Below, in pieces: positions 4,984 through 50,172 of a stretch of DNA of 64,000 nt (position 1 is the stretch's first letter; each line of letters starts with the position of its first letter). Below the pieces are notes generated by a model, which did not search any database, was not told the DNA's origin, and saw only the letters and a list, made by a program, of their open reading frames with translations. Location of the stretch: sequence record NC_016163.1. One strand, 5' to 3'. Made by a program: the position numbers and the translations under genes.

Positions 4984-5211
4984 ATGTATAAAGTGACCGA
5001 AGTAATTAGTAACTCTGTAAATATTCATTTTAAAGCACAAGAAGATTTATTATTTAAATTTGGAAGAGGTTATGTGACAAGTCTCCAAATGGAAACTCTT
5101 TTCTTAGCTCAATCTAAATTTTATGCAAAATTGGATTTATGGAAAAGTAGTAGCTTCGATATGAGTGAGGTTATCTCTAGAGGTTCTACTATTCGAATTA
5201 CTGATAACTAG
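4984..5211 (+). CDS. Hypothetical protein, 75 aa
   Basis: Abuts previous stop; operon packing. Confidence 0.65.
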   Translation: MYKVTEVISNSVNIHFKAQEDLLFKFGRGYVTSLQMETLFLAQSKFYAKLDLWKSSSFDMSEVISRGSTIRITDN

Positions 5212-6042: not shown

Positions 6043-6120
6043 GGGCCATTAGCATAGTGCTCTAATGCAGCCAGCTCATAACTGGAAGATCACCGGTTGG
6101 AATCGCGGTATGGCCCACCA
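6043..6120 (+). tRNA. tRNA with CAU anticodon, probably Ile2 (lysidine type) rather than Met
   Basis: GGGCCAT/ATGGCCC acceptor with C4-G69 and C5-G68 (TilS determinants), CTCATAA loop, encoded CCA; atypical D and T loops. Confidence 0.8.
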
Positions 6121-9390: not shown

Positions 9391-9413
9391 TTATAACAAA
9401 AGAATTAGAAGAG

Positions 9414-9516
9414 TATTTAATGATACTGTATTAGGTTTTCCCTCTTCCTTTAAACCTAATTAAGCCTGGGTTGGTTAGCCGAAAGCAATAGTAACTAATA
9501 CAGTATCGATTAAGTA
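9414..9516 (+). ncRNA. Unassigned structured RNA C with pyrimidine-rich loop
   Basis: GATACTGTATTAG 9422-9434 pairs with 9495-9507; hairpin TTAGGTTT/AAACCTAA closes loop TCCCTCTTCCTTT. Confidence 0.65.
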
Positions 9517-9535
9517 TTTTTTTTTTAAGAATTTA

Positions 9536-9613
9536 GACTCGCTAGCTCAGTTGGTTAGTAGCGGATGACTGTTAATCATCAGGTCGCAGGTTCAAGCCCT
9601 GCGCGAGTCGCCA
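9536..9613 (+). tRNA. trnN: tRNA-Asn(GUU)
   Basis: GATGA-CTGTTAA-TCATC, acceptor GACTCGC/GCGAGTC, CCA. Confidence 0.95.
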
Positions 9614-9623
9614 TATTTATTAT

Positions 9624-9698
9624 TGTCCCTTAAATTAGTGGCTAGACAAATCCATTGTAAAATGGGCGGCACCAGTTCGATCCTGGTAGGGACAACCA
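9624..9698 (+). tRNA. Degenerate tRNA-like gene, anticodon ambiguous (GUA or UGU)
   Basis: Perfect acceptor TGTCCCT/AGGGACA plus ACCA and T arm ACCAG-TTCGATC-CTGGT, but unpaired D arm and 6- or 8-nt anticodon loop. Confidence 0.7.
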
Positions 9699-9699
9699 A

Positions 9700-10046
9700 A
9701 TTAGTCTTATTCCATTAAGACTTACAGACTTAGCTACCAGCTTGGTATCTGAGAGCCTTCTCCCAAGGTTTACCCATAGTTCTATTCGAATAAGGTGAAG
9801 AATAGTTCCGATATAATCACTTCTTAGGAAATGATTAGTGTCTCAGCAAACCGTATGAGACTGAAAGGGTTGAAATAAACGGTTCCTCTAAATTAATAAG
9901 ATTGAATATATCGATCTTAGTGCCAAAGTCGCCAGATACATACGGCATAAATAAAGAGGAGTAGACTAATCAACTACCCTTCTTTATATAAAAATTTCCT
10001 TGTTGAAATGGTAAGGAAGGTAGTTATGCCTGATTCGAAAGAATCT
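9700..10046 (+). ncRNA. Unassigned pseudoknotted RNA D
   Basis: Many short helices; H-type pseudoknot GTCTCA/TGAGAC with loop AACCGT pairing ACGGTT 9879-9884; long-range pairs TATCTG/CAGATA and GGCATAA/TTATGCC. Confidence 0.55.
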
Positions 10047-10060
10047 AAATAACAAAAAAA

Positions 10061-10305
10061 TAGAAGTCCTCGCTTCTAGATGACGGATCAATTTTTTGTT
10101 GTATAAGTCATTAAATTTGAGGTTTTGAGAAAAACTGAGGTTTTTGTCATTAGGCTCTTTACATTTTTGCCCTCACAATTTGTAATTACTTTGCCACTGC
10201 ATATCTTCTTTATGAAGAAAAAATCTACTGTCAGAAGTAGAAACATGAATTCCTTTCAGGCTGAAAGGTGGATGCCCTTATTTAGATAACTCTAGATAAG
10301 GGCAT
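10061..10305 (+). ncRNA. Unassigned hairpin-rich RNA E (own late promoter at 10051)
   Basis: Hairpins at 10061-78, 10080-111, 10113-181, 10252-68, 10272-305; no ORF. Confidence 0.45.
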
Positions 10306-10321
10306 TAACAACCCACGATTA

Positions 10322-10560
10322 CGGGGATGTAGTGTTTATTTTTCTAGGTAGTGAAAGCGTGCACCAGTAACTACCATGTTTACCTCCCACTAAAATGGTG
10401 AAGAGTTAGATCAACTCTTTACTAGGCTACATAGGTATGTAGGGTATTGGAGGTTAAACATTCTATAAATACCAAATGTTAAATTGGTGGAATGCCTATC
10501 CGAGATAACTATCAGATAGAATAGTTAAAAGGGCGTTAGAAAAATTTCACTGCATCCCCG
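10322..10560 (+). ncRNA. Unassigned multibranched RNA F (~240 nt)
   Basis: CGGGGATGTAGTG/CACTGCATCCCCG plus ATTTTTCTA/TAGAAAAAT closing helices; at least five internal helices. Confidence 0.7.
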
Positions 10561-10585
10561 TTCCCTAATTTATTAAGGAACGAAA

Positions 10586-10741
10586 ATGTCTGCTAGTAAA
10601 GAACTTGAAATTGATATCGATAGCGTAGTGTTTAATGAAGATGAGCTTCAAGAGTCCGTTAAACATAACGAAGAGAAAATTGATTCTCAAGAAGTAGTTG
10701 AAGCTTCCGATGAATGTGATGGCGGCGGCTGTAAGATTTAA
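10586..10741 (+). CDS. 51-aa acidic peptide ending DECDGGGCKI, like the ribonucleotide reductase alpha C-terminal redox tail (missed by ORF track)
   Basis: AAGGA RBS, ATG, in-frame TAA, family terminator at 10748; CxxxxCKI as in E. coli NrdA CESGACKI. Confidence 0.75.
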   Translation: MSASKELEIDIDSVVFNEDELQESVKHNEEKIDSQEVVEASDECDGGGCKI

Positions 10742-10909
10742 AAACTTCCCATATCCTCTATTAAGGGGATATGGGGTTTTCTTTCCTTCTTAAAAACGTA
10801 TTTGGTAAACCTTTAAGAATATATTATTTTAGTGATATTGGGTGTTAAAACTCAATGTTAAACAAAAACAAACACTAATTCTAATAAGCAATAAAAGGAA
10901 TACCACAAG

Positions 10910-48561: not shown

Positions 48562-48911
48562 CATTTACATTCATCATAGTTCGTTAATCTATGACCGCTT
48601 TTTAAGCTGCTATATATTGCTATATAGATTAGACTATATCTTAAGTACATAACCTATTATGTACCTCTCCCCATTTCGCTTTAAAGGATTTTATAATTGA
48701 AGCCATTCCACTTCAATAACCTACCACTTGGCGCTACTCTACTTGCTTATTCACTTAGATTTCGGTCTAAGCTATGCTTTCGATAGTCGTTGAACCTTAT
48801 TCAATAATTTTTATATTATTTTAAATAATATAAAAATTCTTAAATCTTGGATGCTGATTGTCTCAATGAGAGTTCCAGCAGTTAAAGGAGTTTATAGTGA
48901 GCATCAAGTTT
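48562..48911 (-). mobile_element. Group I intron (350 nt, no ORF) in polB
   Basis: P1 AGTGAGT/GCTCACT with U-G; TGCTGG..TCAGCA P4; TTCAACGACTA and AAGATATAGTC P7; terminal G 48562. Confidence 0.92.
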
Positions 48912-50172
48912 ACTCACTTTTCATATTAACTCTAGGGCGATCTTCTGGAAGTACACCAGCCGCCTTAGTTAACTTATAGAAAACATCACCGATGAAATTA
49001 GTAATAAAGTAAGTAATTACAGCACCGATACTTACACGTTTTTCTTTAGTTAATTTATCAGGGTCTTCACCTGTTGAATCACAAATGTACTCAATAAATG
49101 GACGAATGTACAAGAATGTTGAGTCAGTATCTGATAACAGTACTGTTTTTCTCATCATTGCTTTTACTTTAGTAGTTTTATTTGAGAATGGATAAGAATA
49201 GAATACGAATGCTTTCATCAATTCATTCAATTCTTGAAGACTTTCTTTAATATCTTCTGGCGGTTTCTCAAAATTAAAATAGTTTTCTACAATTAGATTA
49301 CTTGTTACAAATTCTTCAATAGAAGGTAATTTTAAAAACTCCATTAAGTTATTCTTATAATAGAGCATTTCTCTAACTGAGGCAGTTTGACTTTTAACCA
49401 CCTTAATTACCATGTTTCTAATTTCGTCTGTAACTAGGAAGGTACATTTACCAAGTAGATGCTCTACAACATCATTAGTTGTTAAATCATCATTTAAAGT
49501 AAATTCTGGATCTTCCTCAAGATTACAGATATTATACATATACTGAGTAAGTTCATGTTCAGTATCAAATGTAAAGTTACCAGACATAAAGGCTTCAAAG
49601 CCTAAAATAGCGGAAATGATAATTTGCTGTCCGGTATAAGTAATTGATGGGCCGAGGTCAGGGTTAAAGAATATGAATGAACTTGCCCCGAATGCACCAT
49701 AATAGCTGTTAGCTAGAATTTTAAAGATGAGCTGCTTGATGTCAAGGAAATTATAAAGAGATTTATCAACATCGTTGATATGTTGAAGCATTTCCTTTTT
49801 AGTTACTTTACGAGCTTTAAGTAGGAACTCAAGGAACATTCCTGGAAGGTTTTCTTTCTTATTACGGTTATAGAAAAGAGTATTAAAGCCAGTAATGATT
49901 AATCGTTTATCTTCTGGAAGAACTTTATTGTAGACGACAATATCGGCTACTGTTGCGTCCGAATAAGTTTCCTGAACGTTATTATAGACTACTCCGTTAC
50001 GATTCTTCCAATCCTGCAGATAATCGCTTTTTAGTCTATTCCAATCAACTTTTTTAGCTTTTTTTCTTCCTAATGATGTAAGTTTTTCCTTTAGATCATT
50101 AAAAAAGAAGTCAAACGCTTTCTTTTCATTTTTAGTTAAACTTTCATAAGTAATCAATGTTATACACCTCAT
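48912..50172 (-). CDS. polB: Family-B DNA polymerase C-terminal subunit, exon 1 (probable TTG start at 50157)
   Basis: Motif B KILANSYYG and motif C SDTDS. Confidence 0.92.

Follow-up and report, generated by a model that had tools for sequence, protein, structure and literature searches.

The small gene g117 of the Yersinia phage phiR1-37 encodes a peptide whose last ~11–17 residues match the redox tail of the enterobacterial class Ia ribonucleotide reductase (RNR) alpha subunit, including the positions of Cys754 and Cys759 in E. coli R1, a likeness that is confirmed by sequence comparison. The peptide is best read as a trans-acting tail that host glutaredoxin or thioredoxin could recharge and whose target is probably the host RNR. 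No description of a natural gene encoding only the RNR alpha tail was found in the literature searched. A conserved tail gene in an RNR-less phage, found again in many jumbo phages and in Neisseria, suggests that the thiol electron relay of the cell is tapped in a manner not yet described. In its broadest form the proposal is that the RNR alpha tail serves phages and some bacteria as a portable, genetically encoded dithiol arm rechargeable by redoxins, which may be free, fused to one of several unrelated carrier domains or placed in the isc operon of Neisseriaceae, and that these arms represent a previously unrecognised class of small proteins plugging into host thiol relays, with the phiR1-37 copy controlled by a new ornate RNA of ~850 nt that masks the ribosome-binding site (RBS). 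Taken as a whole this is possible, if on balance doubtful.

Gene g117 and its product

The window, meaning the whole 64,000-nucleotide stretch of DNA that was analysed, corresponds with 100% identity to bases 62001–126000 of phiR1-37, a jumbo phage of Y. enterocolitica with a genome of 262,391 bp. An earlier sequence-only reading had picked out an open reading frame with its own RBS and terminator and had described it as unannotated. The frame and both signals are present (Table 1), but GenBank/RefSeq does hold an entry for it, g117 (YP_004934351.1), under the name 'hypothetical protein'. The record places the Rho-independent terminator of g117 at 10748–10775, and the terminator scan recovered the same structure.

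The g117 product ends in ...ASDECDGGGCKI and contains 16 Asp and Glu residues against four Lys and Arg, with a pI of 4.05. The acidic and probably disordered character that had been assigned to it agrees with this composition and with an AlphaFold2 model based on a 48-sequence alignment (A2), in which residues 35–51 form a low-confidence tail (pLDDT 57–59) behind the single helix. g117 encodes a genuine small protein, made up on this modelling of a short acidic helix and a predicted disordered C-terminal arm. Across the family the helical part is only loosely conserved. A Pfam scan of g117 at E<=10 matched no family and, because the tail is too short, searches of PDB, Pfam and PHROGs with the peptide or with alignment A1 returned no usable match.

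Table 1. Positions of g117, its parts and its flanking signals in the window
Feature	Position	Strand	Basis
Candidate structured non-coding RNA, possible leader or regulator of g117 (bounds approximate)	9730..10585	+	Conservation and covariation
g117 Shine-Dalgarno sequence (RBS)	10574-10579	+	Annotated in record
g117, stop codon included (ATG start; 51-aa acidic peptide)	10586..10741	+	ORF list, GenBank CDS
g117 codons 18-34, single predicted alpha-helix, acidic/amphipathic part	10637..10687	+	AlphaFold2, pLDDT 80-87
g117 codons 35-51, flexible tail with Cys44 and Cys49	10688..10738	+	Match to class Ia RNR alpha C-terminal tail
Intrinsic terminator 3' of g117	10747-10776	+	Terminator scan: 13-pair stem, 6 GC pairs, T-run

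Likeness to the class Ia RNR alpha tail

The tail of the RNR alpha subunit is the textbook 'swinging arm'. The PDB chains of E. coli R1 (e.g. 2xaz_A, 761 aa) end in ...DDGCESGACKI, where the cysteines are residues 754 and 759, and the NrdA of Y. pestis (L036:2093-4378) ends in ...DDDCEGGACKI. The latter is identified as NrdA by its Pfam domains, namely the ATP-cone (PF03477), the all-alpha domain (PF00317) and the barrel (PF02867), the last of which finishes at residue 731. The g117 family shares with the E. coli tail a CX4C pair whose second cysteine is third from the end, the terminal Lys-Ile, an acidic run ahead of the first cysteine and flexibility; in g117 itself the pair is Cys44 and Cys49 of 51 residues, flanked in the enterobacterial manner by the acidic run, a loop glycine and Lys-Ile. 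Unlike the NrdA tail, g117 has no RNR body attached, possesses its own start codon, carries a helix of unrelated sequence and resides in an RNR-less genome. With 51 residues, its own ATG and no Pfam match, it contains none of the ATP-cone, all-alpha and barrel domains of an RNR polypeptide. As g117 has the sequence features of the alpha tail but is not an RNR polypeptide, it is filed as something that works like or is derived from the alpha tail rather than as a member of the RNR proteins.

Several comparisons lead to NrdA, as the sequence-only reading had supposed. A degenerate DNA pattern drawn from family members, encoding Cys-Glu-x-Gly-Ala-Cys-Lys-Ile-stop, was run against bacterial genomes, one for each species, and matched at least 120 loci; among the matches listed, ~100 are the 3' ends of ORFs of ~760 aa from Enterobacterales, Shewanella, Vibrio and others. 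A profile built from the phage tails alone aligns with NrdA C-termini over 11–17 positions, and with 17 of 19 positions at the ends of the NrdA type found in Proteus, Providencia and Photorhabdus. With tblastn, NrdA residues 744–762 land on 10682–10738, at the end of g117. When a Neisseria member of the family was compared by phmmer with all PDB sequences, the best 13 matches were all R1 C-termini. Single E-values for the tail match are weak because the match is short, and the likeness is made secure by the way the matches sit end to end and by their exclusivity. The ending is also rarer than chance would readily supply: within the window C-x4-C-x-x occurs at the end of two of 737 frames of at least 30 aa, one being g117 and the other an unrelated frame.

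Heading the PDB matches of the Neisseria protein is 1qfn_B, a separate chain formed by a free peptide of 25 residues from the R1 C-terminus. We take 1qfn to be the mixed-disulfide complex of this peptide with glutaredoxin 1, so that a free peptide of such sequence would be a redoxin substrate. Like the members of the family, 1qfn chain B is a free peptide with an RNR tail, and as such a studied object; it is, however, a laboratory fragment in which one cysteine has been replaced, whereas g117 and its relatives are natural genes.

Free-standing and fused copies

The search for orthologues by tblastn that had been suggested for g117 finds 66 phage records, all of them jumbo phages (of Erwinia, Klebsiella, Serratia, Salmonella, Escherichia and others). 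A profile search of a 5.8-billion-protein collection gives 54 proteins of 43–64 aa; when 1.84 billion representatives were searched exhaustively with a profile, 52 cluster representatives passed E<=1e-3. The family consists mostly of free-standing genes of 42–94 aa in jumbo phages, and its members are all named 'hypothetical protein' in the databases. The cysteine pair on which the earlier reading had relied is kept throughout: Cys44, Gly47 and Cys49 are invariant in 48 aligned sequences, with Glu39, Lys50 and Ile51 conserved in at least 90%. Among 60 members the last eight residues are CEGGACKI in 23, which is exactly the ending of Yersinia NrdA, CEGGGCKI in 15, CDGGGCKI in seven, CESGACKI in five, which is exactly that of E. 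coli R1, and CEGGACKL in four, with six singletons.

The tail is not confined to small proteins. Ten of the 52 representatives are longer, at 115–360 aa, and end in the complete ~45-residue module, which is preceded by one or other of two unrelated N-terminal domains of unknown function. In a 163-aa ORF of Salmonella phage SA002 (L002:3614-4105), a member of a fusion family, the module makes up the C-terminal third; since P0055, P0059 and P0060 share the same type of fusion, this is a conserved family and not an annotation error. For one carrier domain (A3) the AlphaFold model has a mean pLDDT of 62, and a Foldseek comparison with PDB and BFVD gave nothing significant. A slightly broader tail pattern, scanned over IMG/VR, gave 84 loci. 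Here the tail is found on phage NrdA proteins of ~750–940 aa, in several further subfamilies of free 40–70-aa peptides, on N4 Gp49-like proteins (PF13876, 123–164 aa) encoded on viral contigs of ~70 kb, and on unrelated proteins of 123, 263, 296 and 360 aa. Examples of the N4 Gp49-like carriers with an RNR-type tail are L205:5689-6108 (-) and L223:1193-1582 (+).

Free homologues of 42–48 aa, all annotated as hypothetical, also occur in Neisseria, Eikenella and Moraxella. Those of Neisseria (L009, L083, L100, L172) and Eikenella follow iscR and have iscS on one side and iscU on the other, and the Moraxella homologue is located elsewhere, away from isc genes. Locus L254 is a further one listed for the isc-operon homologue of Neisseria and Eikenella, and in Neisseria L083 (homologue at 5063-5191) there is an extra ~800 bp between the tail homologue and iscS.

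These placements suggest that the partner of the tail may not be RNR. The peptide could instead be a general, portable dithiol arm, a two-cysteine shuttle that redoxins recharge and that is not specific to RNR, working with Fe-S cluster assembly (IscS/IscU), as the Neisseriaceae position suggests, or with the carrier domains to which it is fused. It is mainly the isc-operon position in Neisseria and Eikenella that keeps such a partner in consideration, along with the occurrence of the tail on N4 Gp49-like proteins and at least four other unrelated proteins and of the whole 45-residue module behind two unrelated N-terminal domains. Yet the Moraxella homologue has no isc neighbours, the phage copies share no conserved neighbouring gene in the four phage lineages compared, and NrdA is the only protein of known function with this tail, so that a general arm of this kind appears somewhat unlikely. 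Nor is g117 itself of the thioredoxin, glutaredoxin or NrdH type, which is characterised by a thioredoxin fold and a CXXC motif: it is predicted to consist of one helix plus coil, has CX4C and matches nothing in Pfam.

RNR content of the carrier phages

The complete phiR1-37 genome was searched by tblastn with the NrdA, NrdB and YfaE of Y. pestis. The earlier observation that the window lacks nrdA holds and extends to the whole 262-kb genome, in which the only NrdA-related alignment is g117 itself. The whole genome of pEa_SNUABM_32, an unrelated carrier phage, likewise has no match to NrdA, NrdB or YfaE besides the peptide gene. Neither the phiR1-37 record nor its authors' table contains a reductase or redoxin annotation, and pEa_SNUABM_32 has no annotated reductase. 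The tblastn test addresses class I RNR, other RNR classes being judged by annotation alone, and the absence applies to these two phages among the carrier lineages, which also include FBKp24, Miami and SA002. No homologue of NrdA, NrdB or YfaE was found near the tail in the 52 viral loci (402 kb in all) whose tail-bearing protein is not an RNR. The Yersinia host NrdA has a complete tail of its own.

These results bear on the first suggestion of the sequence-only reading, in which the phage was thought to have a split RNR with its swinging arm encoded separately, so that a phage NrdA lacking the terminal CxxxxC would be completed by g117. Apart from the tail likeness nothing speaks for this arrangement. 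There is no nrdA anywhere in phiR1-37, with or without its tail, neither carrier phage has an NrdA or NrdB homologue or an annotated reductase, and the host tail is intact. For class I enzymes in phiR1-37 and pEa_SNUABM_32 the split enzyme is thus refuted, and as a general explanation it has become barely credible. RNR genes in pieces do exist: in the T4-like phage Aeh1 nrdA is split by a homing endonuclease and the two pieces reassemble. The resemblance lies in having RNR parts as separate phage genes, but in Aeh1 both pieces are present, whereas phiR1-37 and pEa_SNUABM_32 have no other piece.

Selection and expression of g117

The g117 ORF is kept at the same place in five metagenomic relatives of phiR1-37, between the blocks g112–g115 and g118–g121. 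Pairwise dN/dS against these relatives is 0.07–0.31, with synonymous change saturated, a pattern that clearly indicates purifying selection on the protein. Expression is very low. In the published infection transcriptome the mean total gene reads of g117 are 3.9, 1.5 and 1.2 in the early, middle and late phases, compared with 110 reads for g115 and 34,486 for g118 on either side (PMC4848604, Table S2). With so few reads, g117 must be regarded as almost silent in laboratory infection.

The low counts would suit a view of g117 as an untranslated ORF or as a captured nrdA 3' end in the course of decay. The tail itself probably derives from an nrdA 3' end, given its 17-position match to NrdA tails of the kind seen in Proteus, Providencia and Photorhabdus, and this too would fit a remnant. 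A blastn search of E. coli genomes with the 3' end of a phage homologue gave no nrdA match, so that there is no DNA-level trace of recent capture. Decay is nevertheless difficult to reconcile with the dN/dS values and saturated synonymous change, with the gene's own start, RBS and terminator, and with a family that spans unrelated jumbo phages and has an invariant cysteine pair. Consequently, a remnant or untranslated frame is very improbable.

The structured RNA upstream of g117

Between the tRNA-Asn region and the g117 start lie ~850 nt (9730-10585) that hold no credible ORF and yet are more strongly conserved among the five phiR1-37 relatives (0.9–0.97) than the g117 ORF (0.83–0.88). RNAalifold predicts 226 pairs in this element, 29 of them with double compensatory changes. 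In a column-shuffle control the consensus energy of -185.5 stands against -91.3 +/- 6.1 (z = -15.5), and the 29 compensatory pairs compare with 7.6 on average and at most 13 in the shuffles. Scanning of 9400–10900 with Rfam 15 (cmscan, E<=10) gave only tRNA-Asn, a weak tRNA-like match and matches at chance level. Exact-word scans for further copies of the RNA returned phiR1-37 itself only from IMG/VR, and none or only chance 18-mers from the metagenome collection.

At its 3' end the element runs directly into the translation start. A hairpin that pairs 10559–10564 with 10577–10582 has the g117 RBS in its 3' arm, and the AUG is also paired; its free energy is -9.7 kcal/mol (z -2.35) and its sequence is conserved in six of six relatives. 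A long-range alternative pairing is also predicted by RNAalifold. The sequence-only reading had remarked in passing that the peptide might be regulated by RNA, and a covarying RNA that is situated directly upstream and is predicted to pair with the RBS and start codon lends support to that remark. Sequestration of the RBS and AUG could account for the low expression of g117 in standard infections.

Large ornate phage-associated RNAs are known from GOLLD and ROOL, which are found next to tRNA genes. The element upstream of g117 resembles them in being several hundred nucleotides long, rich in helices, adjacent to a tRNA and encoded by a phage. It differs in having no Rfam match at E<=10 and in abutting the start of a small ORF with which it pairs. 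It is a candidate for a new ornate RNA, and may represent a new class of large structured RNA tied to translational control. The published phiR1-37 transcriptome reports no RNA species at this position (PMC4848604).

Two annotations overlap or adjoin the element. The annotated gene g116 (10088-10246, -) is antisense within it, has zero published RNA-seq reads and is probably not a gene. Directly after the tRNA-Asn, at 9624-9695 (+), is a degenerate tRNA-like sequence that scores 27.1 bits against an Rfam threshold of 29 and is not called by ARAGORN.

Proposed role on the host thiol relay

Since phiR1-37 encodes no RNR and the tail of the host enzyme is intact, the peptide would have to act in trans on components of the host relay, in which electrons pass from thioredoxin or glutaredoxin to the NrdA tail and then to the active-site disulfide. 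The cysteine pair of the peptide would be reduced by host glutaredoxin 1 or thioredoxin, in the manner of the free R1 fragment, and the free arm, once reduced, could reach the site in which the NrdA tail is normally accommodated. In this way the peptide may supplement or modulate the re-reduction of the host RNR, a tentative proposal that we rank above the alternatives while giving it less than even odds. Blocking is thought less likely. In phiR1-37 the translation of g117 would probably be gated by the upstream structured RNA through sequestration of its RBS and AUG.

The sequence-only reading had offered, as an alternative to a split enzyme, a mimic that boosts or hijacks the host RNR or redoxins. 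This is consistent with all the findings and is preferred; binding, electron transfer and the sign of the effect are each steps that we infer. Action on the host RNR is favoured by the identity of the tail with NrdA ends and its invariant Cys44, Gly47 and Cys49, by purifying selection, by the predicted disordered tail after a single helix and by the lack of NrdA and NrdB in both carrier phages and near the tail in the viral loci. Moreover, the carrier phages infect Enterobacterales, in which NrdA has the same terminal motif, and the best PDB matches of a family member, 1qfn_B included, are exclusively R1 C-termini.

Set against these points are the near silence of g117 in the published RNA-seq and a difference in sequence: of the four residues enclosed by the cysteine pair, two in the phiR1-37 clade are not those of Yersinia NrdA. 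In addition, a free peptide should lose the competition for the active site to the tethered tail of the host enzyme. The isc-operon location and the fusions to unrelated carriers, which allow for a partner other than RNR, also weigh on this side. The N-terminal acidic part was considered separately as a mimic of the NrdB C-terminal tail that docks on NrdA, and this candidate was rejected as its profile matched no NrdB ends among 20,534 ORFs from nrdB-containing loci.

A free tail might equally act as a decoy or inhibitor, which soaks up host glutaredoxin and thioredoxin or plugs the site on NrdA that receives the tail, and so damps the host RNR or other thiol-dependent processes of the host. 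Functionally this would be comparable to Sml1 of budding yeast and Spd1 of fission yeast, small disordered proteins that act at the RNR large subunit and interfere with the work of its tail. The tail likeness serves this explanation as well as it does the preferred one, the protein is small, acidic and predicted to be largely disordered, and the bulky carrier domains fused to some tails could deliver a block to the docking site. Sml1 and Spd1 are, like g117, small and disordered (in g117 by prediction), but they do not copy the tail itself and show no sequence similarity to g117 (Pfam at E<=10, PDB sequences); no sequence relation to known regulators was found in Pfam. Both carrier phages examined lack an RNR of their own and, with a genome of ~260 kb, a phage would suffer from inhibition of its only source of dNTPs. 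This dependence on the host RNR favours a role in supplementing or modulating re-reduction, and a decoy or inhibitor is unlikely.

If the peptide does work in trans on the host relay, it would show how RNR-less jumbo phages handle the dNTP bottleneck, and the re-reduction step of class Ia RNR could be dissected with a naturally occurring tool. For several proteins of unknown function, testable leads come from the N4 Gp49-like carriers and from the isc-operon copies of Neisseria and Eikenella.

Other features of the window

A tRNA-Met (CAU) is annotated at 6043-6117 (+), yet ARAGORN reports no tRNA there, and nor does the Rfam tRNA model at gathering score. A group I intron (RF00028, 63.4 bits) is located at 48610-49009 (-), between the DNA polymerase pieces g164 and g167, and the tiny annotated ORFs g165 and g166, which lie inside or next to the intron, are without RNA-seq reads. 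At 27545-31543 (+) the terminase large subunit is annotated as g143 (210 aa) and g145 (469 aa) with g144 (526 aa) between them, and g144 may be an insertion in the terminase gene.
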